This document shows positions 1 to 39,300 of a DNA stretch of 64,000 bases, one piece after another. The stretch is from Eutreptiella sp. 'Long Island Sound 2002'. Lineage: Eukaryota; Protista; Euglenida. The notes beneath the pieces are model-generated. The model saw nothing but the letters and a program-made list of their open reading frames with translations. It had not been told where the DNA came from and made no database searches. Positions within the stretch are counted from its first letter, which is position 1, and each line of letters opens with the position of its first letter. The stretch covers positions 182,962,001-183,026,000 of the forward strand of contig OZ038378.1 in the NCBI GenBank assembly GCA_964036045.1. Reading direction: 5' to 3'. The position numbers were made by a program, and so were the translations under genes.

Positions 1-1060
1 TGCCAAGCCCCCCCCATCTTTACCGAAACCCCCCCCAAGAGTACCCAAAAAACCCCCATTTCTTCCCCCAAAAAAGACCCAATCTTCCCCCCCCCCCCCC
101 GCCGCGGCCAAAACTCTTACCTAAAAAATCCCCAATTCTTACAAAAAAACCCAATTTCTTACAAAAAACCCCGTTTCTTACCAACCCCCCCCCCATTTTT
201 TACCAAAAAAGCCCGCCATTTTACCAAAAAAGCTCCTGCACCACCCAACCGTTTGGACGACCCTACCACACCCTGCAGCCATACATTAATTGAACTACAA
301 ACACAAAGCACAGAAACACGAAAAAAACGTCCACATAGATCAAACTCTTGAGCAATTATTGTTGCATGGATGTAGGTGTATCCACACCCGTGGATCCCTT
401 CTTTTCCAGGCACTTAGTGCACCCATACTCACTTGGCTACCACACCAATATGTTGTATTATGACCGAGGCACTGCACCTGAAGCAAGCAAAAAGAAAAAA
501 GGGAAAAAGTGTAGACTTGTCAAAATCGCCGATTGGTCGGCAAAATATGGGTTGTTGCCGTGAAGCAGATCTCCATGCACTCTTGACCACTACAACCAAT
601 GAGCAAACACACGGACAAAGACCGCATGCTCTTTCCTCGTGTTTGTAGACACCTCTGCTTTGGCTCTCACTAGATCGGATATGCAAGCCACAATCTCCTT
701 GCGCGTGCAATTTTTGCAAATCTTCCACATATCATGGCACATCTCTTGGTCGGACTGTAGCCTACCACCATAGCCAACCGGAACCGGAAAGTGCTTCCTC
801 CCGATTTTGACAAACGTGGGAGCGGGGTTGCATCCCCATGCTTGTTACAAGAAACCTCCCCAACGGAAGCGGGTTGCAGCGCATCCTTGGCAGGGCAATG
901 GGTACTATCCTCCTTCATTACAGCAACCCATGCAACCAACCCGGCTGCACGCACATCACCGCAGTAGTGGGTTTTGACCTTCCCAACGCACATCCATTTG
1001 GTCGCCTTGCACAGCCACAATGCGACCACAATACAAAGAGCGCTTTTCACCACCAGTGGT

Positions 1061-18080: not shown

Positions 18081-21000
18081 ATGACCTGTTGGGTTTTGTT
18101 GCTCTTTGTTGTATCAAGTGCCATAGCACAGGACGAGCTGACAGTGCTGGACTTCGTAGCCAATGGGACCACCGCAATGGCTGGTGAGGCATTGTCTGCG
18201 TACGAAGGTTTTGCCAAAAAGGGACGTAAGGACTTTAGGTCTGCCTTTGCGCAAGGAGTCCCCTTCCCACATCCCACGGACCGTTTGGTCTCAGCAACAG
18301 CATTGCCAACAGCAACAGCGATGCCAACGTTAACAGCAACTCCATCTCTACGTGCAGTTTTCTATGTGAAGTCGGGGCTTTGTACGACGGACAACAGCTG
18401 CTTTAGGAGCCCTTTCTACCCTGCCGACTACGGTAACGGTGACCAATGTACGATCGTCGCCGCAGGCAATGCAATATTGCGTGTAAACGACTTCGCAACG
18501 GAGAGTTGTTGTGACTCTCTAAGCATCAATGGGGTGGCCTACAGTGGCTCTGATGGGCCCTCCGGGCTATATGTGGCTGCTGGGACCGAGATCATTTGGC
18601 AATCCAATGCCGCTGGAACAGCGGGTGGGTTTGAGATCTGCAAGATCACAGGATCCGTGGAGGCCTGTGTGTTCGCGTCAGGGACCAACACCTCTGCCAC
18701 CACTCCCTCTGCCACTCCGCGCCCCACACTATCAACCACCCCATCAGCGTCCCTGTCCTGCACATGTACACACACCCCAAAACTTGTGCCCACAGCCACT
18801 CTTTCAGCCAGTCTGTCACACACAGCATCAGCGGCTTCATCATCCACTGCAACAGTCAGTCCTTCAAGAACAGCGTCCACCAGTGCACCACCCTCTTCCT
18901 CCTTCACGGCGTCGGTCACAGGGTCCGTCACACCATCAACCACTGCGACTGCCCAGCCGTCACCCACTCCAGCAGCCACACTGTCGGCCACCCTGTCAGC
19001 AACAATGTCGGGCACGGCATCAGGTGTTGCATCAGTCATGTTCTCAGTAACACCGTCACTCACTGCACGGGATACACTGTTGGCCTATCCGTCAATTACG
19101 CCGACCATGACTTGCACGCCGATTCCCTCGGTTAGTCCGTCCGCCAGCCCCTCCATCACTCCATCATTCACCACCTCATCTACCCCTTCAGCCGCTCCGA
19201 CATGCACTGCTTCAGCCACCTCCTCGGGCACTTCCTCTGGCACTTCTTCAGCCTCTCGGTCAGCTTCATCCACGGCCACACTGACCACCACCCCATCAGC
19301 CGTCACAACAGCCACCACAACAGCCAGTGCGACATTCAGTTTCACCGCCACATCCTCAGTGTCCGCCACAGCCACTCCATCAGACACTCCATCATCCAGT
19401 TCGTCAGCCATTTCATCAGCCACTCCCTCGGGCAGCTCATCAGCGGCTTCTTCATTGACGTCCACTGTGACATCTACTTCCACAGGCACGTGTTCACCGT
19501 CTGTATCAGCAACTGCATCAGCCACCCTGTCATCCACCGTATCAGCAATTCCCTCATTCACAGCATCAAGCAGCTCATCAGCGACTGCGTCATTGACATC
19601 CTCCGTCTCGTTGTCAAGCCACCCGACGGTGACACCTACACTCACCCTCACACCCATTCCCTCAGCTACTCCATCCCCTGCCCCATCATTCACTTCATCA
19701 TTCACCACCTCATCCACCCCTTCAGCCACTCCGACATGTACTGCTTCAGCCACCTCCTCGGGCACTTCCTCTGGCACTTCTTCAGCCTCTCGGTCAGCTT
19801 CATCCACAGCCACGCTGACCACCACCCCATCAGCCGTCACAACAGCCACCACAACAGCCAGTACAACATTCAGTTTCACCGCCACATCCTCAGCGTCCGC
19901 CGCAGCCACTTCATCAGACACTCCGTCGGGCACTTCAACAGCTGTATTGTCACTCACCATGTCACTCACGTCAGCAACCACCACGTCAGCCACGTCAACC
20001 GCCACATCATCAGCCACTGCGCCAGCGACCATTTCAGCTACGCTGTCCGTGACTCCTTCATTCGGCTGGCCCGTCATCAGCAACCACTGCCCGTTCCCGC
20101 GTTCCGTGTATAACATGTCCCTTGGCACATCCCTGGCCGATTGCAGTGTGGCCTGTGCCCAGGCTGCCCAGTGCGTCAGCAGCCACCATGTCAGCCACGT
20201 CGCCACTTCAGCAGCCACTGTGCCAGCGACCCTTTCAGCTACGCTCTCCGTGACCCCGTCGTCCTGTCCTCCCGTGAGCCCCGGTTGCAGCAGCGACCGC
20301 GACTGTGGTCGCGGGCGATGCTCCGCCGCGCGTGTCTGTGTGTGCCCTGCGCGCTTTGCCGGCGCCAACTGCCGTGTGTGCGAGGCCGGTCGGGCCCCGC
20401 CGGGGAGTGCGACACACCCGTGCCCGAGTGCGTGCCCGATGCAGTGCTACGGGACTGCGACGCGGGCTGATGCGGCACCATCTACAGCAATATGGCCGGC
20501 ACCCGGTACCCGCCCAATGCCCGCTGCCCCTGGCGCATCGCTCCGGCAGCCTTGCGGCCCACGGATGCGGTGTGCATCAATGTCACGCGGTTTTGGACGG
20601 AGCAACACTGGGATAAGCTGTGCGTGACCGCCGGCGCCGCAAGCAGTACGACGATTGGCGACGCCTCATTGCAGTGCCTGAGCGGGCAGCGCACCCCGGA
20701 GACCCTCGTTGGGGCGCTTGGGCAACCGCTGGAACTGACATTCACCTCCGATGCCTCCACCGAGTTCTCCGGCTTCGACGCCTCCGTCAACGTGTGCCCA
20801 TGCGCGGGCTGCAGCGGCTACGGCGCTTTCGTTTGCGCTGCGTGCGTGTGCGACCCGGGCTGGGCAGGGGCACTGTGCGCGCGCCCGCGCTGCCCCCGGC
20901 ACTGCTCCGGCGCCGGCCGTTGTGCCACGGAGGGCTGCGAGTGCTACAGCGCGTGCCCGCCGCACGGCCCCGCAGGCCGGCGTCCAGGCCGTGCCCCCTG

Positions 21001-24000
21001 CGGAACTCCGCGCGGAGGTCGCGCTCACCCACCACGCCACGAACGCCATGCACTCCGTCTTTCGGTACACGGTGACCTCCCCGAACCGGTCGTGGTCCGT
21101 GCGGCTGCTGCTGGGCCTGTGCCTGCCCCCCGTCGGCCGTCTGGGCCATCGGTGGCATGGCCGCGGCCCCGGACCCGCACACGGGCCTGTTCGGCATCGG
21201 TTGGGACCCCGCGGCCGCGGCGACGGCCCCCGCCTCCGCGGCGTTCGCGCAGGGCTGGCGGCCCACGTACGCGCTGGTCCTGGAGGGCGTGTGGCCCGCC
21301 TCCGGGCGCCTGCCGTACGCCCTGCGGGACCGGCTGCGGTACGCCGAAGGGATGGTGCGGGAACCCGCCGCCCCGCGGTACGCCGTGTCAGGCCCGGCCT
21401 GCGAGGTCCGCACCTGCCGGCACCTGCAGACGGTGGAGGTGGACGTGGGCGATGAGGTGCGCTTCGTGAGCCGAGCGGTTGGCGGGGAGCTGCGGCCGTA
21501 CCCGCGCGGCCTGGCCTGCCAGTGGCACGTCCGGGCACGTCGCGCGTGCATGCGGCTGGAGCTGGAGGTGGCGGTGCTGGAGCTCGTCCGCAGGGCACGC
21601 TTGACCGATGCCGTGGTGTTGCAGGTCTCGGACGCGGTGACCAACACGACCGTCCTCCGCTGGGCCCACGGTGTGGCCGCCCCTGTGCAGTACCATGTGT
21701 TCGCACGGGATGCCTTTTGGGTCACGTTCATCAGCAATGCCGGGGGCTACGAGCACGTGGAGGCCCTGGGGCTCGACTTCACGGTGCGCGGGACGGAGCA
21801 TGACTGCGTCACCCCCACTGCCACGCGCACGCAAAGTGTGTCACCGGAAGCCACACACTCAGCGACGGTGGTGCCCACCGCAACCTCAACGGCAACGGCG
21901 ACCGGTCTTCCCACCGCAACTGCAACAGGGTCCCACGCAACTGCAACAGGGCGTCGCACGGCGACGCCCACCACAACTTTCAGCGGCATGGTGCACCCCC
22001 GCTTTGCCTTCGGAGTCCATGAGCTGGACCCTTCCTGCAACGTGACGGCCACACCTGAGCAGTTTGGCTTTGGGACGCATGGCTTGGCAGCGGGGCCCGC
22101 CTCATTGATGCACTGGGGGCACACTGAAGGTGTTGTGGCCTCCCTGTCGGACCTGTCCGTACAGCGCAGGTACCCCATTTCCGCGGATCGCATGATTTTC
22201 AGCGACGTGGCAGATGGAAAGGTGTATGAATTCACTGGAATGCCAAGCGGGAGGCGCCGCGCCTTGACTGAGCTTCCTGAACTTGACGAGGCCGACCTTG
22301 ACCGCACAGCGCAGGTCATTCGGCTGCAGGTGCAGATCGTAGCGGAGAAGGGCTGCACGTTTTTGCCGGTCGGGGCCAAGTGGTGCTGCTCGACCGGTAC
22401 GACCGGTGGGTGCGCGTGGTGCTGGACTCGACGCACGCCACGGGGAGTGTGCAGTACTTGGCACAGAACGGCGGCCCGTACACCCCTCGGACGTGCCATG
22501 ATACCGTCACTGGCCGTTTCGCCCTGGGGGTGGTGGAGTACAACGGCTGCCAGCACCACGTCGTGTACTTTGGGGAGGACGGCCGGACCGTCCAACGCAA
22601 GCCCATCCCGAAGGGGGACGCTGCGCTGCACACACCGCATTCCCGGGCGAATCCGGTGCGTGTGAGCTCGCGGTAAGTGCTCGGCACGCGGCGTGGTATT
22701 TCGCATCGAAGGGGCTGGGCTGGGGCCGCCGGCTTGGCGTGCGGCCCGCGCTCGGGGTATGCGGGGCAGTCACCGCCGCTCCGTACCTACCCACTCGTAC
22801 CCGCACCCCAAGTGCCACGGCGGTGCCGACAGGCACACTCACGCCGTCGCTCCGTCCCGTCCTCCCCGACGTGTTTCCCGATGGGCGAGGGCCCGACGCC
22901 CGCGACTCACCCACCGCCTACCAATACCTCTGCGGGGCCTGGCTGGACTCGCCACGACAACAAGTCCGGCGCGTGCCCGTCCCCGAGGCCTGTGCCGTCG
23001 ACACGGCGCTGTGCTGCCTGGCGTGGCTGGGCCCGCGCCGGGCATCCTGCGTGTTTGACGTGCGGGCCTTCTGCGATTGATCAGCGGCTAGCGCGACCCT
23101 CCTGCAGCGGCTGGAGGATCCGCGCCTGCCTGCGGTCCCGCCGGAGCTCATTCCTGCGGTGTCTTGCCACTGCAGTGGCCATGGGGCGTGCAATGTGGGG
23201 AGCTACGTGTGCGTGCCCGGGTGGTCGGGCACCGACTGCGCAGTGCCGGTGTGCGCCTCCTGCAGTCAGGGGGTCTGCATGCTGCCTGGGGCCTGCAAAT
23301 GCCACGAGGGGTGGCAGGGGCTGGGGTGTGCAGAGTCCACTCCGCACGCCGCCGCCGCTGTGGCAGTCCGCGCCTTGGCGGTGGTATTGGGTGGATTGGT
23401 AGTGGTGGCGGTGGTGGGAGCGGCATTGGGAGTATGGGTTTTGCGACGGCGGAACCGGAGGGGGTGAGTGGCACCTGATCCTAACCCTATACCCACCCCT
23501 AGATACTTCTGCGTGCCTCCGGCTTCTGATCTCCAATATCTCCCGAGGGTAGGCTCGTTCAGTCGCCAGCAGCGTCCTTTTGGGCGGAGTGTTGATACTG
23601 AAGTGCGCATGACGCAGGAATGCGAAACGTGCCACGCCAAACGGGAATGGCTGGCGGAGCGCGAGGCTGACATCACTTGCGTCTCACGGCGGCTGCTCCA
23701 GTTGGTGGACCCGGAGCTGCCAGTGGAGTCGGATGAGCCGCCCCGGGACACGGTCAGGCGGGTGCTGCCGGACATGCCTGAGGCCACGCTGCCAGTCGAT
23801 GTGCACGTCGAGGGTGCTGGCATGAGCAGCGAGGCGGCGATCTTTGCAGACACCCCAACTACGTCCGCGCCCACCTCACCCCAACGAGTTGAGCCGGTGG
23901 ATGTCACGTTCACCACGCTGGGGACCGAAGGGCACACGGGGCCCACCAGGATCGGCGCTCACTACGATGGTATGCGGCTTGAGGGTAAGGTGACCTTGGT

Positions 24001-27000
24001 CGAGGGCTATCAACGATGGAAGGTGCCGTACACCAGGCGGTACCGCATCGAAGCGCACAGGGCTGCCAGCCACCCGCAACGGTGCAATGAGGTCTGCGAT
24101 TATTTCTGGCACGCGGGCAATGGCGCGATCGTGCACGCGCGGCGACTTTCAGCCGCAAGCCGGCCGGTGTCTGCTTATTCTCGTCGGCCAACACCCGTTC
24201 AAGGCTACTGGTCCATTGCAAACCTGGGGGGGGGGGGCCTCCAAGCCTGTCCAAACAAGGGGGTGGGGGGTGTAACAAATAGGCTCAAAGGGCCAAGCTA
24301 GCAAATCATCTCGAAGAGAGGTTGTTAGACCAAGCACAGGTGCAGGCGTCGTATACCCCCTCTTTTTTGGGTTCGTTCGCATAGCATACCCCCATTATGG
24401 TTTCTGACGTCTAACCCCTTGTAAAATCCTCATTTTAGGACCAAAAATGATCCCCCAATTATTTTTTGGATTTTTACCCTCCTACAACCCCCTACCCGCG
24501 TACTCCTTTTTGGGGGGGGGGGTCGTGGGGGGGGGGGTTAAAAACTTTTTTGCGTATTATGGCCGTTGTGTGTGTTTTTGACCTGGGTCCCAAAGAACTT
24601 TTTTCCAGAATATGGACCCCCAAACCCATGGCCATCGGATATTTTATCATTTTGAATGTTGAATGGTTAGAATATAAATAAAGTCAGTTTTGGAAATCAC
24701 CTCGCAGAGGTTGTTAGATCAAAGCCACGCATGCCTGTATACAAGGGAAAACGCCACATACCCCCCCATTTTGGGCCTTTTTGGGCCTATTTGCGTACCC
24801 TACCTCAAGGGGTTGAATCGTGTGTTTAACCCCTTGTAAAATCATTATTTTGTCCAATAAATGCATCCCCCAATGAGTTTTTGGTCCGGACCCCCCTAGA
24901 CCCCCCCACCTGAAGCCCACTTGTTTGGGGTTTTGAGGGACGTGGGGGGGATGAGGGGGGGGGATGACCCCCCCCTTTTTTGGGGTCGAAAATCATGAAT
25001 CTTTTGGTTTTTTTCGATTTTGAGCCGAAAAAGTGTTTCCGGGTCCCGAATCCATGGGGTTTGTATGGGGCGGAGTGGGATGAGCACTGATGCAGTTTAT
25101 GCATTTTTCGGCCATTTTTGCTATGTTGGCAGTTTTGGCGGCCTTGGTGAACCCATGGTACCCACTATGAGGGGTGTGAGTGGGGATGTTGTGACAGTAT
25201 ATGCCTACTAGGGTACGAAAGGACGTTTTTTGCAGTCTCTAGCCTTGCCGAGGGCCGGTCAAACCCCGTGCCAAAGACGTGAAATGACAGTTTCCACCAA
25301 TAATGGCCTACATGAGTGAATGGGCCGGTGCACAACCTGCTTGTGTAGTTTTTCACCATGGGAAGCTCAAAAATCAAGTTTTCGAAACTTAGTTTTTTGA
25401 TATTGTGATCACCTAAAATGACCATCCAAGGTATGTCATGTCATGTCATGTCATGGAGCGCTAGAGCCATCGTCCGCTGGTCCACCCAGTGGGCGTCCAT
25501 CGGCAGAACGTCTAGCCGTCACACACACACGCACTCCGATGGAATGGGCCCCAGGTGAGGGGGGGCCGAGAGCACCATGCATGGCGCGAAGGAGAGAGGT
25601 ACCCGGACCAAGCTAGGCCCACCACGGGCATGCGAGCGGACGCTCAAAAACACCAGTCCCGCCGACAGGCCCCAGCTTTTTGGGTACTGGTGGGTTTCAC
25701 CTTAAATGGAATGGGCCCCAGGTGAGGGGGGGCTGAGAGCACCATGCATGGCCCGAAGGAGAGAGGCGCCCGGACCAAGCTAGGCCCACCACGGGCATGC
25801 GAGCGGACGCTCAAAGACACCAGTTCCGCCGACAGGCCCCGGCTTTCTGGGAACTGGTGGGTTCCACCTTAGACGGTCGACGCGCGCACTCGAGGCACAC
25901 TTGGTGAGGCAGTGGTGCGTCTGCCCCTCGCAGGCTGCACCGCTGACCCCGGGGGGTGCCCAGGGTGGGTGGCGGCGTCGTCGGCCGGCCTAACTTGGTT
26001 AAGAGAGGACTCTTCCTGGCGATGCCACTGTCATCGAGACCTAGGACCTCCCACCCGGTGGCGAGAGACACAATAACCGCGCGCTGCGGGAGCAACAATG
26101 TTTCTAGGGGCAGGGCCTCAGTCAGTTAAAATGCACCATGTCCTCATTCTGCCGCAGCTCTGCCACCACGTTAGCGTGGTGTGCCACCATCCAGATGTGG
26201 GAAAGGCCAAGTCCATCGGATAGAACGGGACTGTTGGGGCATTTTGACTGTTGGGGTTCATTGGGCTGCTGCGTTGACCAGCGCTGCACCGCTGGACGGG
26301 TCGAATCTGCACGATTCGTAACGGTAAATCAGACCTCAACAGGCATTTTAGATTCAATAGGAGAATCAATTGTAGCCGCATCTGCGTTGTGGGACTGCTT
26401 TGAAACTCGCATTGTCAGCTTCACCTCGGGATTGGTCCGACAACCATGCCGTGTTGCATTGGTCACTGCGTGGTCCAGGATAACGTCGCACGCCATGGGA
26501 TCCAGCATCACCACATGAAGGGGGCATTCAAATTCGACGTCTCTGCCCCTCACAAAGTCTGCCGCAAACTCGTGAAGATTGACAACCTCCGGCTCTGATT
26601 CGTATTGTCCGGCCACCATCCTCAGCATCGCTTCGCGCAATTTGCACCACCACATCCCTTTGAAGAGGCCGTCAGAGGCTTTTGAAAGGAGATCGACTGA
26701 GGGCGAACGTCCTAGACCTCATGAACGCCAACTCTGCGGTCTCAATGCCACGAAATCCTGGTGGCTTGACATTGGAATTGAAAGATCCATCGCATTCGTT
26801 TGGGGTCACGGCGAAAAACCTCGGGTAAGACGATGTGCTTGGTGCCCTGGACTTGCCCTTTGACTGCACGGACACCCATGTTGCGATACTTCGGGCCCCG
26901 TCCGAAAAGGTGCTAGACTTGTACGCCACCGAATGCACAGACAGACCCCCCTGGGTCTGGCATGCTGTATGCACCCATCGTGGAACTACCAGGGCTTCGG

Positions 27001-30000
27001 GATACATGTGAGAACCGCGAGGAACAAGCATCGTGTGCTTTGGACATCCCTCGTCTCTTGGACTGCTCGGAGTTGCTTCGTGCCCCATCCGGGCCATGGT
27101 AACAATCCCCCAAGACAGAGGACCTACTTGAAGGGGCTGGAGAAGCTGAGCTTGGATTTACTGGGCGGACTTTCGGGGAAGATCTGCCTAGGGCCTTGAA
27201 TGGGGAGCGAGATTCTGATGGAGTGTCCCACGGGTGCACTGCGGATGCAATGAGAGTCGCACCCTCCTCAGCGGTGGCAACGTATCTCTCTTTCGAAAGG
27301 GACACCCGTAGGCTCGGAGTCCCCGGTAAATTGACAGAACCCAGCACTGGTGCAAAAGCAGAAGTCAGGGACGAAACCACGCTACTGCGGGGCTCGCTAG
27401 TGCGGGCCTCGCTACTTCGGAGCTCATCCAGGACCATCGGAGAATGTCGTCGAGCGGGATCAACATTCGTTGTTCTGAAATCAAGGAACCCTTGGGCCTC
27501 TTGGACCTAAAAAAAAAAATGTCCGAGTAACATGGGACATAGACAGTTCCCGTGATCAGCAAGGTCGTCCTGCAGGCAACAAGCATCGACAGCAGGTGGC
27601 GGAGTTCAAGATGCTGGGGGCTCCTGTGGCAGCGACACGGGGAACACGAGGAGCATAGCGGCAGCACAGCCTGTTTTGTTCTTGTAGTCGTTCCCGGCTG
27701 TGCCCGAGCTGCTACTGCAGGCACACGCGGCTGCGTCGCTTGTTTTGCGAAAGCAGAGTCAAGGGTGGGGTGGGGGGGGGGGGGGGGCAAAGCTGTGGCA
27801 GACCGCCTCGCTCAGTTGACACCCCATTTCCCATCCCCATTCTGCCCGTGGTTGGTGCTGTGAAAAAACTGATAGGGCTTGTTTGTCGCAGCCCAAAAAC
27901 GGCCTGGTGGAGCAGTGTGCCAGCTGGGGTCAGGTGGCACTGCAGATTGAGCCCTGGGACCATGAGTAGGTCCCCCGGGTGGGCTGTCGGCTGGTCGGGG
28001 CATGTCGGCCCAGAGCGTGCCTATGGACTGGCCTCCGCGCCGTTAGGGGGGCGAGGAGGGGGGGGGGGGGCTGGGGAGGGGGCGTTTGCATTTCACCCAG
28101 GACCGGACTGGGCTGACGCACGACACCGTTAGCACCCCTGCCACAGGCAGGGGCCCAGGCCTTGTCGTGTGGGGCTCCGCACCTGGTCACCATCCCTGGG
28201 TGGGTGGCTAGCTCGGCATCCAAGGTATGTAAAGCATGTTTTAGGCCGTATTTATTTCGTTTTCACCTTATTTGGGTATTGGGCGCGCGGGGGGGGGGGG
28301 GGTCTCCCAAGTGATTGGTACACAACCTGCTTTCCACCAATAATGGCCTACATGAGTGAATGGGCCGGTGCACAACCTGCTTGTGCCGTTTTTCACCATG
28401 GGCACCTACAAAATCGAAGTTTCTGAAACTCATTTTTTTGATACCGTGATCACCTAAAATGATTATCTAAGGTATGTAAAGCATGTTTTATGCAGTATTT
28501 ATGTGTTTTTCACCCTATTTGGGTATTGGGCGCGGGGGGGCGGGGCACCCAAGGGATTGGTACACAACCTGCTTATGCAGTTTTCCACCCTGGGCAGCTC
28601 AAAAATCGAAGTTTCTGAAACTTATTTTTTTGATACTGTGGTCACCGAAAAATGACCATCCAAGCATGTTTTAGCCCGTATTTATGTAGTTTTTACCCTA
28701 TTTTGGGTATGTATTGCTTGGGGTAGATTCTCTGCGAGGTGGACTTGCTGAAGGCAATAGAATTTCCATTTTTTAAGCTGCAGAGGCTAGAAACTGCATA
28801 CATAGGTTGTTCCCCAACCCCCTTGGGAGCCCCCCCCCCCCCCAAACACTCAAATAGGGTGAAAAACACACAAAGAGAGCATTCGTCTTATAGCGTCCAC
28901 TGGCCTATATACAGAGGTCGAGGGGCGGGGAGGTGGGCCGAGTCGAGTTCAGGCGCCCGTGTCCTCCCCTACAGGCCCCCCGCCTGTGCCCGCACGGTGG
29001 CCAGGAGGGACGAGGCGGTCATGACTAAGTCACTTCCGAGCTCGCCCTCCCGTGCAGCCGCCGCCGCGGCGCTCTTGCCCTCCGGGCTGGGTTCCCCGGC
29101 GCCCCGGAGGACGCGCCCGTCAATGGGGGGCTGCTGCTGGCCGCCCCCCGCCGCTTCACCCCTCCACCCTGGGCCAGCCACAGGCCGAGGCCCTGCTGCG
29201 CGCCCTTGTACCCTGCCTGGGGTGAGTCGGTCACCCCGTGTCCCCTCATCACTCCATGCCCCTCCGGGGCCGGCCACAGGCCAAGGCCCTATACCACCTC
29301 TTTCTCCCTCTTTTGGAGTAAGGGGGGGGGGGGCTATGCGCACTCACCTTGGGGAGGGGGTGATTGTGGTCCCCCATCCCCCCTGGCCCCTCTGGGGATG
29401 CCCCTCCGTTGGGGCACCGTGCTGCCGACAGGGGATGGTCTTGTCCTTTCCCTACCGTCAATTGGGGGCGGGGGTCGGGGTACCCAAACCCTCCCCCCTC
29501 CCAGCACTCTGCTTGTCCCTGTCCCAGGGTTAGGTTAGGGGAGGGGCGTGGAGGCAGCCCTTAGGGCCTCTCCAGCACAAGGCCCTCGTCCTCTGGCAGC
29601 GCTTCGCCATTGAGCAATGCACTAGTCGGGCGGGCGGCAAGGCCCGCAGGCAGCGCACCGGCAACGGCATGCAAGATTGGCAGCACTGGTGGCTGCGAAG
29701 GTAGCGCCGTCGCCGCTACCCCCCTCCTGTTCCCCCGGGGCCTGGGGGGCAGGGGGCTGTCATCTGGGCAATGGAGGGGAGGGGTGGAGCCCCACCCCTC
29801 CCTACGACATACAAGAGCTGTCCCCCAGGGCGCCGCACAGGGCTTGCGTCCCGGGGGAGGGTTAGCGTATAAATCGATGGGGGAGGGGGGGGCAGCACAG
29901 CGCAGCCCCTGCTCCCAAAAACCGTGCAGCAGCAGCTCCCGCACTGCATCTTGCAGTTCTTGGATGCACCTGCCGGTGCATTCCTCCTCGTCCTGGAGGA

Positions 30001-33000
30001 CCCCAAACTGGGGGATGGGGTGTTCTGGTTTCTGCACCCCCTCCCCCCCCCCCTGGATACCTCCTGTTCGGTGCTGCCCCGTCCGCCAGGACTGGTGGCC
30101 TGGGCACTATGGCTGGTGCCACCACTGCCGCCAGACTTGATGGTCTAGACGCCATTGCTGGCGCTACCACTACTGGCGCCGCTACTTCCGCCAGACCTGG
30201 TGGTCTGGACCCACTGCCCGAGCTGCAACGTCCGCCAGACCGGGCGGTCTGGACATCACTGCTGGTGCTGCCACTTCCGCTAGACCTCGTGGTCTGGATG
30301 CCACTGCCGGTGCTGCCACCTCCGCCAGACCTGGTCTGGACGCCATTGCTGGTGCTGCCAGACCTGGTGGTCTGGACGTAACTGTTGGTGCTGCCGCTTC
30401 CGTCAAACCTAGTGGCTTGGACGCCACTACTGGACGCCACTACTGGCGCTGCCACTTCCGCCAGACGTGGTGGTCTGGACGCCACTACCGGTGTGCCAGT
30501 GCTGTAGCTTCCGCCAGACCTAGTGGCCTGGACGCCACTGCTGGTGCTGCCACTTCCGCCAGAGCTGGTGGTCCGGACGTCACTGCTGGTGCTGCCACTT
30601 CCGTCAGACCTGGTGGTCTGGACGCCACTACTGGCGCTGCCACTTCCGCCACTTCCTCCAGACCTGGTGGTCTAGACGCCACTGCTGGTACTGCCAACTC
30701 CGTCAGACCTGTTGGTGTGGACGCCACTGCCGGTGCAGCCACCTGTGCCAGACTTGGTGGTCTAGACGCCACTACTGGCGCTACTGGCGCTCCCGGCTTC
30801 GCTAGACCTGGTGGTCTGGACGCCACTGCTGGTGCTGCCACTTCCGCTAGAGCGAGTGGTCTGGACGCCACGGCCGGTGTTGTAACATCCGGACCCCCCG
30901 CCCCCCGAAGTCGACGTTGACGGCGGCACAGGGGCAGCCTCACTGTTGCCGCCACTGCCCTCGAATCTGGCTCCGCTAGCGCTAGCGCCAGAGCTGGGCG
31001 TCACCCGTAGGGTTAAGGGTGGGTCAGGGGGAAGGCCACACTTGGATTTATGGATGGCGCCCAAGCGAGGCGCGGGTGGGAAGCTAGGGCCACAGCAAGG
31101 GGTTAGACTGCCGCCGCCGCCTGACGCCATCTGGGCCCTGGGTGCGCCACTGACGGAGGGGCTGAAGCCCCCAGAGTGCCCAGGGATGCCGCGCTCCTCC
31201 ACGGCGCCCACCTGGGCTATGGCCGTATAGACAGCCTCCGGGTGGGGGGGCAGGTCGGCCCCCGGGCCCCCGAGGGGCATGTGCACCGCGTTTCCCACAA
31301 TGTCTGCGCAATATGCAACCCGCTGGCTGCCCCAGAGAGCTGCTGCGCCCAGCCCTGCGGCCTTCTCTGCTGCTGCATCGTCAGTGTCCATGAGGTCGGC
31401 CCACGACCGCCGGGCAGAGCCTGTGGGGCTAGGGTGCTAGGGGATGCATCCCCTCCAGCCTCCGGTGTCCCAGAAGCCTCCTGACGGCCGCCCGAGGAAC
31501 CAGCAACCAGTATGGCCGCCAACGCGGCCAGCACGGCCGCTATCTTGGCGGCGCTGGGCCGCCGCTGCGCGACGCTGGCGGCGGCTTGCGGTTGTCGGCA
31601 CCATTGGCGATGCCGGGACGGTCGTCATCGTGGGGGGCAGGGAGGGCCAGCGGGCGTCCCCCTCCTCCCACAGGGTACCCTGACATACCTGACCGGCTAC
31701 GGGCGGCGGCAGCGGCGGCGGCGCCTGCGCCGCCACATTGTTGACGCCCCGATGGGGGAGCAGGACCGCCCCCTGGTACCCCATGATGCCCAGGGGGTCC
31801 GTCCCCGGGCAAGCGAGGTGCACATCCTCGTCGACACCCCGCTTGTATTGTAAGCGGCGAGCGTCCGGCCTGGCATGAGCGAGAAGGGTGTGCCCCCATT
31901 CATGAGCCAACCCCCCCCCAGGGTCCTCCCAATTGGTGATGTAATGAAACGGTGCCAAGGGAGCTCCCCCTTCATGGAGGGCCCCCCGCGGCAGAGACAT
32001 GGTGATTGCGGCTTGGCTAAGGCAGCCTCGCCATGTGAGAGGCTTGAAAAACACACAAAGAGAGTCTAAAACATGCTTTACATGGGATATTTTGGTATTG
32101 TGAATGGTCAGGACATCAAGAAAATTTTGAAAAATTTTTCATCTTTCAACTTTATAGGGCTTCAGCTCTTGGGGCTGGGCTCACCAACATGACCCCACAC
32201 TCTACCATTCCACATTCTACACACATTTGACAGATCATAGCTCACACACATAATGCCCCCTAGTTGGCGCTGCACCCACTGATGCAAACCACCTACCCCT
32301 ATTTTTTTTGTGGGGGGCGGGGGGGCTGCCTCTTTCCTATGCACCCTAACCAAAACAATCCTTGGAGGCAAAATGGTTGCAGAGAACTTTCCAATTGGTG
32401 CAGAGAAAACTTCGCGACAATTGAAAATTGTGGTACAAAATACCCGTGATTCAGAATCCCCCCATCCCCCCTCCAAACACCCAAATAGGTAAAAAACACA
32501 TAAAGAGGGTCTAAAACATGGCGGGGTCCCGGGTCCCAAATCTGGGTACCTCCAGTCAACTCCCCCCATATGTCCCCTTGCCAGTGAGGACTCAACTGTT
32601 TTCACGCTAGTTAGGCTGTTTAGTTGCACCTGAAAATATTTCAAAATTCGACTTTTTATGAAACCCTTCCGTTGCTACTAGGATGGGTTTGGATGATCAT
32701 TTGGTAACAGTGCGGGTACTTGAGCACCCATAGGGACCCACATAGTGGCCGCTAGGCCTCTGTAGCCCATGCCATGGGCCCCCCAAAAGCCCCAAAATTG
32801 TTGTTGCGTAGGCTGTTGAGTGACGCTTGAAACAATTTCAAATTCCGACTTTTTCCAAAACCCATCTGTTGCCTCTAGGATGGGTTTGGGTGATCATTTG
32901 GTGACAATACGGGTACTTGAGCACCCATGGGGACCCATGTAGTGGCCGCTAGCCCGAGCCACGGGCCCCCCAAAAGCTTCAAAATTGCTGTTTGTAGGTG

Positions 33001-33826
33001 GTTTAGTGGCATTTGGTGTGTGCACAAGCACACAAGCAGTAAGGGGTTGGGATGTTGGGAAACAGGCTGGGATGGCCCTCCCCGTGCATTTGAGGTGTAA
33101 TTCTTGGAATTTGTCTGGGGTCATTTGGTGGGCCCAGCCCCAAGAGCCCAATAAGAGGGGGAGGGGTGTGGGAAAAAGGCTTGAAGGCCCCCCCCACCCG
33201 GAGTTGCAATGGATCCCGGGCCCAACCCGGTCAACAGTTTCAGCGGTGGTGGCAGTGGAACTGTTGTGATAATAGGCGCCGATCTCCGAACGGCAGAGCC
33301 CATTCTGGTTGCCGGGGGGGGTGGATCTTGGCGGACCTTCTATTCAGAAATGGGGGACCCCACTCTCTGTCACGCGACAATTGAGAGGACGGGTGTCAAC
33401 GGGGGTTTCGGACTTCCAGGTGGCCCTGGCGGTGCTGGATCACGGCATCGGACCCAAAGCGATGCGGGATCGGGTGCAGCAGGTTTCTCAGGTTCCGTGA
33501 CAGATTGTTTTGATGGCATGACATCAGCGGCACAGTCGTTCCGGGACGGCGGGATTGGTGGGACGTTCAAAGGCATTCGGGCCGACTGCAATGGTGGCTT
33601 TGGTTGTGGCGGCTGTGGTGGATGGGGTGGGTCTGGCGGGGTTGGCGGCTACTCCGGCGGCTCTCCAGGGAACGACCTTACTGTGATGTCAGCAGGCGGC
33701 GGTGGTTCCTTCAACCTCGGCCTGGAGGCACGGAGGCAGGTGCTGAAGACAGGCAGGCAGCAGCGCAGCGCACTCAGAGGATTTTGGACAGGTCCATGCT
33801 GTTGCTATCACTCATTGTTTCTGTGA
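18081..33826 (+). CDS. Large cell-surface protein: signal peptide, CUB, Ser/Thr/Ala mucin stalk, EGF, CUB, EGF, CUB-like, EGF, TM, then an ALK/LTK-type glycine-rich domain. Frameshifted as assembled (possible pseudogene or assembly indels)
   Basis: CUB motifs (RSPFYPADYGNGDQCTI; RYPPNARCPWRI...FTSDASTEFSGF; PYPRGLACQWHV), EGF motifs (CVCDPGWAGALC; CHCSGHGAC...GWSGTDC), TM AVVLGGLVVVAVVGAALGVWVLRRR. Gly-rich domain FTTLGTEGHTGPT...GYQRWKVPYTRRYRIEA...LILVGQ resumes at ~33218 with GGGSGT...PILVAGGGG...GGFGCGG...GGYSGG...AGGGGSFN. About 6 frameshifts and in-frame TGAs at 20468 and 23078. Confidence 0.8.
19164..19925 (+). repeat. Internal ~230-bp duplication in the mucin stalk (19164-19392 vs 19698-19925)
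   Basis: Near-identical CTASATSSGTSSGTSSASRSASSTATLTTTPSAVTTATTTAS coding blocks, period ~534 bp. Confidence 0.9.
23464..23502 (+). other. 39-nt conventional GT-AG intron just after the TM helix
   Basis: GG|GTGAGT...cccctAG|A; removal deletes the TGA at 23465 and fuses ORFs 23159 and 23468 in frame (RRNRRG-YFCVPP). Confidence 0.85.
25540..25872. repeat. Tandem duplication of a ~167-bp unit
   Basis: atggaatgggccccaggtgagggggg...ggtgggtttcacctta occurs twice (~25540 and ~25707). Confidence 0.9.
26121..26680 (-). pseudogene. Histidine-kinase HATPase_c (catalytic) domain fragment
   Basis: VVNLHEFAADFVRGRDVEFEC...MLDPMACDVILDHAVTNATRHG (N-box-like)...FTVTNRAD...SDGLGLSHIW (G2-box-like); in-frame TGA at 26329-26331; no H-box seen. 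Confidence 0.7.
28880..32044 (-). mobile_element. 3.17-kb insertion with a 20-bp target-site duplication, carrying a frameshifted ORF with 15-aa repeats
   Basis: TGAAAAACACACAAAGAGAG at 28860-28879 and 32045-32064; empty-site-like copy at ~32485. ATG at 32000 (MSLPRGALHEGG) lies 45 nt from the element end, with protein-like pieces through 29561; no RT or transposase motif seen. Confidence 0.75.
30080..30900. repeat. ~45-bp minisatellite (gccactgctggtgctgccacttccgccagacctggtggtctggac), roughly 15-17 units
   Basis: Directly visible tandem units; the minus strand reads (PPGLAEVAAPAVASR)n. Confidence 0.9.
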
Positions 33827-35099
33827 CTATTGCTGGTGCTGGTGCTGTTCATGTTGGTGTAACTGTTCATGTTGGTGTGACTGCGGCTATGGCTATGGCT
33901 ACTGTTGTTGCTTCAGCATCCTAGAACAACAACCTCTGTGACAGCAATTGCAAACATTGCTGCATATGCATACCAAGACCCGCATGTGTGATGCACTATG
34001 TGACCTGCTTGTGGCCCTGGTAGCAATAAGTGGCCAAAAGCCTCCCGCAACCATTAGGAAGCCCCCCAGAATTTCTGGTCAGGGTGCATCGAAAAGGGGC
34101 AGCCCCCTCGCACGACGAGGGGGTAGGTGGTTTGAAATGGTGGATGCAGCGCCTTCCCTCAGGGCGGATTGCGCTGACAACCAAGCAAACCAAAACGGCG
34201 GTGATGCAGGGCGCACAGCCAGGCCTGGTATGATGTTCATCCGGTCAATTTGAAATTTAAACAAGGAAATGGCTGGTGCGCGTGAAGGCCCGCCTCGTTC
34301 TCCAATTTATTAGTGAATCTTTCGCTCATATTTATTGTGTGTAGTCGCACGGTGATCCCACTCCCATATCAAGGCTGTTCGTGGTTGTTGTGCTGGTCCT
34401 CCTCTCCTTCGTCCCCGGGAAAAAGGCTTTTTCTACTCGGAGGTTTTCATCTTTCCAGCCCATTCTGAGGCGTCCTTGATTAGGTGTCCGCGGCAGACAT
34501 CGTGTGGCATTGGAAGGTGAACTTGAATGCGCTTTTCAGAGGATCTTGTCATGAACTGCGCAGCCTGTGTGGTCTGTGGGTGACCGTTGGTTACCTATTG
34601 GGAGCCATGGGATGTTATGAAATAAATGTATGTGAAACTGTTTTTGCACATACCCTTTTGGATCCTTTTGGCCTTGAGCCTGGGGTGCGGGAGCGGGTTC
34701 CAAACAAAAGAGGCCGGCTCTCCACAGGCACAAGTGGTCACCATTCTTCTCCCATAAGCTCTCAGTGTTCTTGATAGTCGTTGCATCAAAGGATGTAAAG
34801 TAGAGGGGATCCGTTTTGGATGACACAACACGCGCTTCACTTGTTTTGTGGGAAATGTGAACAGCCCTTGTGAGCGTATAAGTGGAATGAAAGAGGGTTT
34901 GTCTCTGCCCAACAGAAAGAACGAACAAATGAATCGCAGAGAATTCTGAAACATGAATATTTGTGTATTTCTGTCTCTTCGATTTCTGAGGAAATATGTC
35001 ACACACTATGGACACACCTGTGCAGTGCCCCATTGGTGCTGTCGCCGAAACGACACCCGAGTCACACTATAACTCGCCAGTGGGATACCCCCGGGACAC

Positions 35100-36361: not shown

Positions 36362-39300
36362 ATGGGCCCCGGTCCAAAGCTCCTGTGCGCAACGGTGCTG
36401 GTGATCTTCCTGCTGTTGGGTCTTCACGCCGTCTTATCTGTGCCTTGGGCCCAGCGCTCCATCTCGCCGATGCCAGGCACTTCACACGCCATCGCCGCCT
36501 CGCAGCTGCGACCAGCGCTGGGCTGGTCCACGTGGAACACGTTCCGGTGTAACGTTAGCGAGTCCTTAGTGCTGCGAGTTGCCGATGCGCTCGTCGCGTC
36601 GGGCCTGCGTGACCGCGGCTTCAAGTACGTGAATATCGACGATTGTTGGATGGCGCGCACGCGCGGGCCGCGAGACGAGTGGCGCGCCGACCCGCAGAAG
36701 TTCCCGCGTGGCATGCGTTGGCTCGCCGATGCTCTACACGCGCGGGGCCTCAAGCTTGGGCTGTACTCGAGCGGGGGTGCGACCACGTGTGGCGGCTTTC
36801 CAGGGTCGTATGGCCACGAGGTCGTCTGCCCTCCTCCCTCGGCTCCCGCCCCTCCCTGCCTCGCTCACTCACCCCGCGGGAGGCTTTGAAGGGCACGGCG
36901 CGTGTACACCGCCCCAAAACTGCGGCTCTGAGTCCTTCCCAGGCGCTATCCTCTGCCCTCGGTTGCTCTTCAACACCTCAGAGACTACGGCTGGTGGAGA
37001 GGCTAGAGCACATGGATTAAGTGCTACACGCCGTGCGCGCGCGGTGCGTGTGTTGGGGTGATTTTGTAGACCACCTGTTCGACAGTGAAGTGCATGTGTT
37101 TCCAAGCTGAAAAGGTATTACCATTGCACATACTGCAGTGTACCCCCTTACAGTTTCACCCATGTGTCTTTCATGGCTTCCTGCGGGCATCACTGGCACC
37201 TGCACTCGATCAAATGGTGATAGGGTGCCTGTCACCGTCATCTCCGCCTCCGATTGTGGGCAGAACATGAGCATCAAGTAACCAAGGAGCCAAGGAATGA
37301 CTTTCTCCATAGTTCCAGCACGTTACGCGGTGACGTTACCCCGTGGTTGTGCCGTGTTCTCGCCTTCCCTCGCATTGCCTTCGCTGGATTCTGCTATGGG
37401 CTGTCAGGGGGCCAGCCACAACTCCTGTGTCCCAGGGTACCGCCTCCACAAGCTTACACCATCCATCCATCCATCCCTCCCCCATCGGGGGGGCAAGGGG
37501 GGCGGCCTGTTCGAATTCCACACCCCCCCCCCTCCAGACCCCCCCCAAAGTTTTCGAACCCGTCTTTCTCCAATTTGAGATTTGGGGGGAAAGGGTCGGC
37601 GCCAGAGGCGCCGAAATTTTTTTTTCCCTTCCTGAGGGGGTATTTTCTTTTTTACCCCACGTGTCTATACTCAAAATACTCAGAATTTGGTGGAGAATTC
37701 AAAAATGTTTGAAAAACACAGAACATTTTTTGACCCCTGACCTGACCTCCAGGTCTGACCTTGGCTGATGGGAGCTTGAGCTAATGGGCAAATTTTTCTG
37801 AAAATTTTTTTGCCCCATTTGTGTATGTTCAAAATGATCAGCGCGTCATGGGGATCATTTTGAGGTATGTATGTCGGGGTACCCACTGACCCCCCTCTAG
37901 GGACCCTGGCGGCTGACCGGCCGACCCACCTCCCCTCCCCCCCCCTCCAGACCCCCAAAAGTTTTCGCACCCGGTTGGGGTCTAGAATTTGAACAGGCCG
38001 AACCCGTTGGGGGGGGGGGGGTCACTTTGACAAAAAAGCAAAGGAAACACCCGGCACCGAAGGCGCCGAAGAAAATTTTTCTTTAGGTCATATTGGAAGT
38101 GCTGCAGTTTTAGTGTAACCAGTGTGTGGGGCAATCCCCCAGGGAGGGGGGGGGGGGGCACAGTCACTTCATGACCCCCCCCCCATGGGTGGGACCGGCC
38201 TGACAGTATGGGGGGATTACAAGAGGGGAGGGTATGATCCCCCCCCCAGCGGCATTACCAACGCCCTTGTTGGGACAACAGTAGGTGTCATTTCTGTATC
38301 TTTTCCATCGGTCGAATTTGGCGGTGCCTTTTTCTCTTTGTTCGTGCAGATCAAGCTTTTCCTTGATTCCATGATTCGAGGCCGGGGATGGTATTTCAGG
38401 GATGTTGATTACTGCCCTGCCACTTTTTGCCCCTTCCTTTAGGATGTGACTTGCTTCCAATTCATAGACATGGCTGTCTAGCCTCGGGCCTCAATGATGC
38501 ACTGCTTTGCTGCTGGTGCCATTTCACAGTGCAGACATACAACACCCTCGTCAGAACAAGAGGAGGTTTTGGTTCCATCAGTATTTTTGCAGTCCAAGAC
38601 ACGCCGCATCTCACGCTAATCAGGGGATATGATGGCAACGTCATCAACCTATGCCGGGATGGTACTCATAGGGAACTTCCGCACTAGCATTGTGTGGAGC
38701 GCATGGGACGATTAATGTTGGCAACAGTAGGCATCCTTCTTTGACGCTGCACAGCAACGAGAAGCACTAGTCCCCATACAACCCTTGGTAAATGGTGGCC
38801 ACCAAGGCCCGTATGTGTTCAAGGGCCACAAACAGCCGATACCATTCAATGATTGGATTTGGCTTGCTAGGATACGCTTTGGTGATTTCCGAACACCATG
38901 GCCCCATCCGTGTGTTGGTGCAATTTCAAGGTCGTGCACAAGGCTTGTTGCGATGTAGTGTGCCCCCGTGTGCTCCCTGCTTCTTGATTGTGTGTCGGAC
39001 AACGCGGTTGCAATAGGGTCTCGCAAACGGATAAGTATGAGGCACGCCGGTATCCCTTACATGCCCGTGGGCACGCTAATGGGACTGCAGCTTCTAGCTT
39101 GTTGCCGTGGTCCGTTTTTGTATATCCTGGATATGCGCGCGGTCAGCTAGTGTTGGGGGACGGTGCGTTGAATCTAGGCATGACACGCCGCCATGTTGAG
39201 GTCCCATGCAATTCCCCAGGCAGCCACCGGTCTAGGTGGGGGGGCCACATGCCTAGTGCTTTTCTGTTGGGTTTCTCCATATCTAAGGAGAGCACTCCAT

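Follow-up and report, generated by a model that had tools for sequence, protein, structure and literature searches.

Architecture of the locus

The window (the whole stretch of 64,000 nucleotides that was analysed) contains a gene copy encoding a glycine-rich domain that is interrupted by an inserted element (Table 1). The flanks of the element encode consecutive parts of a single domain of the PF12810 type, with profile positions 77–97 to the left and 100–269 to the right. A profile built from homologs matches the right part with E = 1.5e-40 and the left part with E = 1.5e-9; one of these homologs carries PF12810, the ALK/LTK-type domain, and paralog P0017 matches it weakly. The domain pieces, searched separately against Pfam, gave no matches, and neither did a sequence search of the PDB. 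Protein searches, by word index for each flank and exhaustively for the right flank, returned only the open reading frames of the window itself, paralogs and distant homologs; the word-index library lacks the spliced alpha-galactosidase product of this species, used as a control, so blanks in that library are uninformative. Further upstream, a candidate 39-nt intron would take out the TGA that separates the transmembrane segment from the glycine-rich part.

The neighbouring gene, for an alpha-galactosidase, has a GT-AG intron of 7,430 nt, confirmed by collinearity with homolog P0044. A length of 9 kb is therefore not exceptional here, which weakens the original prediction that the interruption would be an unusually long intron.

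Table 1. Features of the interrupted gene and of the inserted element, in window coordinates.
Feature	Position	Strand	Basis or content
Candidate 39-nt GT-AG intron	23464..23502	+	GTGAGT...C-rich tract...TAG, read directly from the sequence
N-terminal part of glycine-rich domain (ALK/LTK GRD-like, PF12810-type)	23897..24129	+	Frame of 23402; profile 6-79
Four extra bases relative to L004, frameshift within the domain	24130..24133	+	Alignment and frame switch of the profile match
Next domain segment (RGDFQPQAGRCLLILVGQHPF)	24138..24202	+	Frame of 23400; collinear with L004 RGEFQLRAGQSLLLLVGQRPV
Left copy of 3-nt target-site duplication CAA	24200..24202		Three-way alignment with empty-site paralog L004
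Inserted element	24203..33222		9,020 nt; without counterpart in paralog L004
Left terminal inverted repeat	24203..24248	+	Outer 9 nt imperfect (GGC matches); 37-nt core from 24212
Nested high-copy repeats	24290..25436		Summed word depth 1e4 to 9e5, versus 10-40 over the gene
Low-copy 2.8-kb insert inside high-copy repeat	25437..28230		Self-BLAST; flanked by 157-nt direct repeats
GC-rich segment	28900..32045	-	Minus-strand ORFs and 45-nt tandem repeats (30166-30879)
Right terminal inverted repeat	33177..33222	-	Holds C-rich run then AG (33202-33203), plus ATG of ORF 33209-33826
Right copy of CAA duplication	33223..33225		Three-way alignment with L004
C-terminal part of glycine-rich domain (NPVNSFSGGGSG...GGGGSFNLG)	33223..33721	+	Profile 100-269, E = 1.5e-40

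The insertion site and its empty counterpart

The ends of the element follow from L004, a paralog (not an allele) from the same assembly (ERZ25074135), which runs uninterrupted through the insertion point (...LLLLVGQRPVNPIERFSGGGGGTFV..., L004:10385–10445 in the DNA alignment to the window). The DNA matches to the two flanks lie back to back, L004:10102–10416 corresponding to window positions 23884–24202 and L004:10414–10577 to 33223–33383; identity to L004 is 83% for 23897–24129 and likewise 83% for 33223–33721. A single CAA in L004 is present in the window at both flanks of the insertion, a target-site duplication that is short, at 3 nt, and is judged against a paralogous empty site. Without the element and one CAA, the window reads HPFNPVNSFS, exactly collinear with RPVNPIERFS of L004. 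No ordinary target duplication exists beside the perfect 10-nt core of the inverted repeats; the CAA copies emerged once the alignment with the paralog had shifted each end outward by 9 nt. A 3-nt repeat taken alone has a chance of about 1 in 64, and the site may also be aligned as an imperfect direct repeat of about 17 nt with a 9-nt deletion.

The left junction is not an assembly error, since a 304-nt contig (23983–24286) bridging the flank and the element is present with 0 differences in the three sequencing runs X1, X2 and X3. Its depth equals that over the rest of the gene. The runs are DNA-like, with even depth over gene and repeats and longest contigs of up to 133 kb, and among the loose ends listed for them none lies at 24203–24212. 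The terminal 75 nt or so of the left end are in a contig of single-copy depth and are single-copy at the 31-mer level.

The inverted repeats and the inside of the element

The arms of the terminal inverted repeats (TIRs), 24212–24248 and 33177–33213, are 37 nt long and match at 32 of the 37 positions (86% complementary), including the perfect core TCCATTGCAA at 24212–24221 and 33204–33213. Their local alignment score is 49, compared with 16.6 ± 2.2 (maximum 28) in 300 shuffles, about 15 standard deviations above, and the two ends cofold with −72.8 kcal/mol versus −35.5 ± 3.8 for shuffled sequences. Both values are far beyond the shuffles, bearing out the predicted 9-kb block with a perfect stem and, on folding, strongly pairing ends. 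The pairing, perfect over 10 nt and imperfect over 37 nt, places both junctions next to each other in the way expected of a nonconventional intron; for the terminal 10 + 10 nt the folding energy is −8.7 kcal/mol, inside the range of terminal folds reported for euglenid nonconventional introns (Gao et al. 2024, PMC11170887).

High-copy repeats begin about 80 nt inward from the left end; in the three runs, which appear to be DNA, those up to 25436 give numerous loose ends and joints. The 2.8-kb low-copy insert is flanked by direct repeats of 157 nt (25291–25446 and 28331–28486, 88% identical by self-BLAST), and the consensus of the loose ends at 25436 runs on as sequence found near 28231. These repeats and the insert agree with the earlier proposal that the block was enlarged by nested insertions. 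On its minus strand the insert has an ORF with a faint resemblance to histidine kinases (HATPase_c_2, E = 0.09 only). In the GC-rich segment, the minus-strand ORF 31437–32054 has an HExxH motif and a weak, reprolysin-like Atlas lead (score 0.84), and a Pfam search of the ORFs of this segment gave no match. Neither a transposase nor a reverse transcriptase domain was found by Pfam search within the element, which thus appears to be without coding capacity of its own. An Rfam search of the window returned nothing.

Searches of the window, of L004 and the further gene copy L003, and of JGI metagenome contigs found no second copy of this TIR, and the search for more elements with these ends, proposed as a check of the original prediction, yielded none there. 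In the DNA searched, mobility of the family is represented by this single element, which is a point against its reading as a transposon.

State of the host gene

About 70 nt upstream of the insertion the domain is frameshifted by four extra bases (L004 GGCGCGGT----CACGCGCGG versus window GGCGCGATCGTGCACGCGCGG), and the profile match changes frame at positions 77–79. The extra bases are confirmed in contigs of all three runs, with 0 differences. A small intron was rejected as the cause of the switch: the profile match is continuous across it, with no missing residues. The claim that excision of the 9-kb block restores the frame thus stands for the final 24 codons before the insertion and fails for profile positions 6–79, which the four bases place in the other frame. 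Both flanks are still open and collinear with L004, and most indels relative to L004 are multiples of three; the frame was perhaps kept during part of the history of this copy.

The ratio dN/dS between the window and L004 is 1.07 over 269 codons (dN 0.19, dS 0.18); a value near 1 is a soft argument in a glycine-rich, GC-biased gene. Family-conserved columns have been lost at similar rates, 6 of 78 in the window and 5 of 78 in L004. L004 carries a TIR MITE of its own, 478 nt long and with a TG duplication, within a coding exon, and L003 is a heavily deleted remnant adjoining a retroelement. This comparison suggests that the gene family is decaying. Given the uncompensated 4-nt frameshift and the neutral-rate divergence from L004, the copy in the window is most likely not a working gene any more.

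Origin of the element

The combination of terminal inverted repeats, a duplicated target and an empty site is the hallmark of a DNA transposon, and the 9-kb block is read as such for this reason; derivation from a TIR element, as originally predicted, is upheld. Judging from the sequence, this is probably an old non-autonomous TIR transposon, later filled with repeats, in a decaying, frameshifted gene copy. The element would have landed in an ALK-type glycine-rich domain, at a CAA of the loop that separates 'LVGQxP' from 'GGGGG', creating the 3-nt duplication, in one paralog of a multi-domain gene (CUB/EGF/transmembrane/GRD) of a euglenid-like genome. Other repeats would later have nested within it, expanding it to its present 9,020 nt. 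With a host copy that has most likely stopped working, as its frameshift and neutral divergence indicate, the paired ends are most likely transposon inverted repeats and not a structure retained for splicing; the copy would be a pseudogene, and dedicated splicing of the element is not expected. One observation runs against this reading: the register in which the ends pair is that of euglenid nonconventional introns.

The 3-nt duplication and the GG... ends suggest, with low confidence, a PIF/Harbinger-like superfamily, on duplication lengths that we take to be typical. TIRs of about 40 nt, a short flanking repeat, an empty site, lack of coding capacity and nested insertions are shared with MITE-type elements of that kind. 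The duplication, however, is CAA here and usually TAA or TTA there, the outermost 9 nt of the TIRs are poorly matched, and no other family member was found in the DNA searched.

Possible removal of the element from RNA

Removal of the element, at least in part, as a conventional spliceosomal intron is unlikely. The donor would be the element's own GT at 24211 and the acceptor its AG at 33202–33203 behind the C-rich run, in an introner-like manner. This GT and AG are present, as originally predicted, and in frame with the left flank over its last 24 codons; the run CCCCCCCCACCC ahead of the acceptor is consistent with the C-rich polypyrimidine tract that conventional introns of Euglena have (PMC11170887), and length is no obstacle, given that the 7,430-nt GT-AG intron in the same window has such a tract. 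The MITE of L004 also offers an in-frame GT...C-rich...AG pair inside its TIRs. However, the donor GTCCA is weak, sharing only its GT with the GTGTG consensus, and the good tract ends in an acceptor that is GAG and not CAG (CCCCCCCCACCCGGAG). The product, ...HPFKAT-VAMDPGP-NPVNSFS..., would exceed the paralog by 10 residues (junction ...GCTACTG/TTGCAATGG..., the slash marking the splice), and the protein would still be broken by the 4-nt frameshift upstream; many other in-frame GT/GC-AG pairs also occur by chance. With the introners of Micromonas, dinoflagellates and others (reviewed in PMC11282704) the element shares its TIRs, a 3-nt duplication, its location within a coding exon, and ends that contain possible splice signals (a GT, and an AG after a C-rich tract). 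Introners are short, high-copy and demonstrably spliced, whereas this is a single 9-kb copy with weak, putative signals.

Also distinctly unlikely is a euglenid transposon turned intron and tolerated at 9 kb, removed either through the geometry of its helix without CAG and CTG triplets, or by the spliceosome at its own GT and C-rich tract with AG.

Euglenid nonconventional introns are said to have been treated by Milanowski et al. in 2014 and 2016. They are thought to be derived from MITEs, with TIRs and repeats resembling target-site duplications, and a full-length circular RNA on excision is one of their features (PMC11282704). For Euglena their genetically defined code is 5'-N3-C-D-G ... 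C-H'-G-N5-6/R; single substitutions within CAG or CTG abolished splicing, and 38.8% of the E. agilis members do not follow it (Nomura et al. 2025, PMC12501133).

According to the original prediction, 24210–33217 (slidable by GG) is a nonconventional or intermediate intron, its ends joined by the TIR helix and excised via CCA and TGG; we regard this as very improbable. The borders T/GG and CC/G are as described, without GT-AG, and CCA (+4 to +6, 24213–24215) stands opposite TGG (−8 to −6, 33210–33212), with the appropriate 3 nt ahead of the one and 5 nt past the other. The short direct repeat GG gives the slidability seen in the class, the end pairing is strong, a transposon-like origin has been proposed for the class, and members without that code exist in E. 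agilis. Of the code itself, however, only the purine opening the downstream exon is found (G at 33218): C stands at +5 and A at +6, the 3' triplet opens with T, and none of the three slidable positions follows C-D-G and C-H'-G, the other two giving CAT with GGA and ATT with GAT. The boundaries had been picked to fit the register, and the true ends are 24203 and 33222 plus CAA. Cutting out 24210–33217 would leave in the mRNA 15 nt that belong to the element and the duplication (predicted junction ACT/GGGCCC), and the ancestral coding sequence is not restored; moreover, the host reading frame is already disrupted 70 nt upstream. At 9 kb the block also exceeds the maxima of 4.7–5.9 kb given for such introns from a draft genome.

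In-frame excision is weak evidence, since dozens of other GT/GC-AG or code-matching pairs near both ends are in frame too. A code-matching in-frame pair at 24205 and 33242 (CTG...CAG) was rejected as being at chance level, with an estimated 7 or so such pairs expected and 9 seen among about 4,900 in-frame pairs.

Precise removal of the element and one CAA from RNA by an unknown mechanism using TIRs and duplication, restoring the ancestral protein (predicted junction ...CCGTTCAA/CCCGGTC...), is extremely improbable: it would be in frame and exactly collinear with L004, and the MITE of L004 plus TG (480 nt) behaves likewise, but its boundaries carry no known signal, neither GT-AG nor CDG with CH'G, the frameshift would persist, and an in-frame result has a 1-in-3 chance for each element.

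Implications

Read as a transposon in a gene copy that is decaying within a repeat-rich genome, the event is an ordinary one. It offers a test case and carries a caution for euglenids, where inverted ends that fit the expected register, and an excision that keeps the frame, are easily found and are insufficient to identify a nonconventional intron. Here, it was the empty site of the paralog that placed the ends correctly and revealed that splicing at the proposed junction would leave the gene unrestored. Should the element be removed from RNA after all, it would be among the few TIR elements without CAG and CTG that act as an intron, the differently placed TIR element of L004 would add a second example from this family of genes, and the finding would bear on how nonconventional introns arose.

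Boundaries of the inserted DNA

The 9-kb block that splits the glycine-rich domain of the host gene is, with high confidence, an inserted transposon with terminal inverted repeats (TIRs). A search with the left open reading frame (ORF) found two further copies of the gene, L003 (protein P0016) and L004 (protein P0017), in ENA assembly ERZ25074135, where the window belongs to a 1.59-Mb contig. L004 is uninterrupted at the insertion site (...GNGAVTRGEFQLRAGQSLLLLVGQRPVNPIERFSGGGGGTFVTVGTDHRTAEPI...); its DNA matches window positions 23884-24202 and then, directly adjacent, 33223-33383. In a three-way alignment, CAA is present once in L004 and twice in the window, flanking the block at 24200-24202 and 33223-33225; this defines the inserted DNA as 24203-33222, 9,020 nt long. 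Taking out the element with one CAA yields HPFNPVNSFS, equal in length to RPVNPIERFS of L004. The original prediction was an intron excised at 24210-33217; according to the L004 alignment, this excision would leave 15 surplus nucleotides (HPFKATGPNPVNSFS). An alternative alignment, invoking an imperfect direct repeat of about 17 nt and a 9-nt deletion, is ranked second because it needs two events and gaps.

L004 contains an insertion of its own, a 478-nt short non-autonomous TIR element (MITE) at L004:10578-11055, in the coding exon after LCHAT, with the TIR TGTACCCTTCGTGAAC... and a TG duplication. Its site is uninterrupted in the window (equivalent to 33383/33390), and removal of the MITE with one TG, 480 nt in all, makes L004 collinear with the window. 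Inside its TIRs lies an in-frame GT...C-rich...AG pair.

The three sequencing runs compared with the window behave as DNA, with an even depth of 10-40 over the gene, about 9 × 10^5 over repeats, and longest contigs of 133 kb. A 304-nt contig spanning 23983-24286 was found with zero differences in all three runs, so the left flank-element junction, the only one covered by this check, is real in genomic DNA. Its single-copy depth places the terminal 75 nt or so of the element outside any young high-copy family; high-copy repeats start between 24287 and about 24396.

Ends and contents of the element

The arms open with a perfect 10-nt core, TCCATTGCAA, set off from each element end by nine poorly matched bases; GGC...GCC at the very termini are complementary as well. 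When the left end is aligned locally with the reverse-complemented right end, the score is 49 (300 shuffles, 16.6 +/- 2.2, maximum 28), with similarity gone beyond 37 nt. An RNA duplex of the two ends is predicted at -72.8 kcal/mol (shuffles, -35.5 +/- 3.8). Sequence checks bear out the T/GG and CC/G borders, the CCA opposite TGG and the in-frame GT(24211)/AG(33203) pair described originally. The inner TIR at 24226-24245 (G12 then CCTCCAAG) resembles an abundant local repeat motif (G13 then TCTCCCAAG; 28289-28311 and 28822-28843), and runs of at least 12 G or C are very common across the window, L003 and L004.

Layered repeats and inserts within the element support the proposed growth by nested insertions; most genomic copies of the repeat surrounding the 2.8-kb insert run straight across its site. 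No transposase or reverse transcriptase domain was found inside the element. A minus-strand ORF at 31437-32054 contains an HEWGH (HExxH) motif; it has no Pfam match and only a weak reprolysin-like lead in Atlas (score 0.84), and may be a captured metalloprotease gene fragment.

Features of the host gene, the inserted element and the adjoining gene
Feature	Position	Length	Details	Basis
Glycine-rich domain, profile positions 6-79			frame of 23402	homolog profile
Glycine-rich domain, profile positions 77-97			frame of 23400	homolog profile
Glycine-rich domain, profile positions 100-269			right-hand ORF, E = 1.5e-40	homolog profile
Candidate GT-AG intron	23464-23502	39 nt	GTGAGT...CCCACCCCTAG, C-rich tract, TAG	sequence reading
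Left/right arms	24212-24248 / 33177-33213	37 nt	86% complementary	sequence comparison of ends
High-copy repeats	24290-25436
Low-copy insert		2.8 kb	between 157-nt direct repeats
Repeat units	28218-28900	~247 nt (unit)
GC-rich stretch		3 kb	minus-strand ORFs and 45-nt tandem repeats
Further repeats	up to right TIR
Alpha-galactosidase (Melibiase_2) GT-AG intron	36821-44250	7,430 nt	GAG/GTCGTC ... CCCACTCTGTCCACTCAG/CGC, C-rich tract

Architecture and state of the host gene

Both flanks are parts of one ALK/LTK-type glycine-rich domain. A Pfam search of the separate domain pieces gave no match; matched to a profile made from the homologs found, among them one with PF12810, the domain runs collinearly on either side of the block. 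Upstream of the domain come CUB modules, EGF modules and a transmembrane segment. From that segment to the glycine-rich part, the only stop sits inside the candidate 39-nt intron; if this is spliced, all these modules would form one protein. An EGF-like module and the CUB-like module that follows it are in different frames, the switch falling at 20440-20490 (CGTIYSNMAGTRYPPNARCPWRI), and a TGA immediately precedes the start of the CUB; the cause is either a short intron that escaped recognition or a further defect of the window copy. A 454-nt interruption at 33722-34175, after ...GGGGSFNLG, is present in L003 and absent from L004 (L004:11407/11408 adjacent). Its best-looking pair, GT(33740)-AG(34162), leads to a stop, GC(33736)-AG(34162) is in frame, and its ends do not match the nonconventional intron code.

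In the homolog profile, the domain switches frame near 24130 without missing residues, and must therefore contain a frameshift rather than an intron; the 304-nt contig establishes that the frameshift is real. The three-way alignment shows four extra window bases relative to L004 (GGCGCGATCGTGCACGCG versus GGCGCGGT, a four-base gap and CACGCG). The shift is uncompensated: by our reading of the frames, a message read from upstream and spliced at 24210/33217 would meet a stop in the right flank, about 55 codons from its start. Over 269 aligned codons, window and L004 differ with dN 0.19 and dS 0.18 (ratio 1.07), and among 78 family-conserved columns six are lost by the window alone and five by L004 alone, roughly as expected of neutral change. 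Two observations speak against full decay: each flank in the window is still open, and the indels separating the copies mostly have lengths divisible by three. Our reading is that the gene family is under relaxed constraint, the window copy being probably a pseudogene.

L003 is a remnant with 90% DNA identity, lacking equivalents of 19322-23093 and about 24166-33736. Some 2.8 kb upstream of this decayed copy, L003:1996-7233 encodes a 1,745-aa ORF with the RVT_1 and RNase_H domains of a retroelement. An insert of about 200 nt (L003:10624-10847) lies exactly at the window's four extra bases, 24130-24133 (ATC/...GTGC.../GCGCGG); these four bases could be its leftover, or it could have integrated where an indel already existed.

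Comparison with intron classes

From knock-in genetics, the requirement for nonconventional introns is 5'-N3-C-D-G ... C-H'-G-N5-6/R (Nomura et al. 2025; PMC12501133). Splicing was abolished when CAG or CTG carried a single change, and likewise when the 5' spacer was changed by 1 nt; 61.2% of nonconventional introns match the code (PMC12501133). Nonconventional introns of E. gracilis have CCAGG at +3..+7 and CCTG at -9..-6 (Gao et al. 2024; PMC11170887). The CCA/TGG of the block breaks the nonconventional code twice in the 5' triplet and twice in the 3' triplet, at all three slidable placements; only register, pairing and purine agree. Compared with the conventional consensus GTGTG...C-rich tract...CAG, the block has a weak donor (GTCCA), a good tract (CCCCCCCCACCC) and a GAG acceptor; C-rich tracts before AG in the window agree with the published Euglena pattern. 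Among about 4,900 in-frame position pairs around the ends, some 50 are GT/GC-AG and nine match the nonconventional code (about seven estimated by chance), so preservation of the frame weighs little.

The alpha-galactosidase gene adjoins, its intron being confirmed by exon-junction collinearity with the homolog P0044 (GSYGHE/RQDAQLMASWHVDLLKYDFCG). The longest introns published from a draft genome measure 8.2 kb in the GT-AG class and 4.7-5.9 kb in the nonconventional class.

The paralog that carries the transposon is frameshifted and evolves under relaxed constraint, and the transposon origin of the block accounts for its paired ends. If any transcript removes the block, the weak GT-AG pair of the element would be a more likely route than the nonconventional one. 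A MITE origin of euglenid nonconventional introns has already been proposed (PMC11282704); the locus adds one more transposon that resembles an intron.
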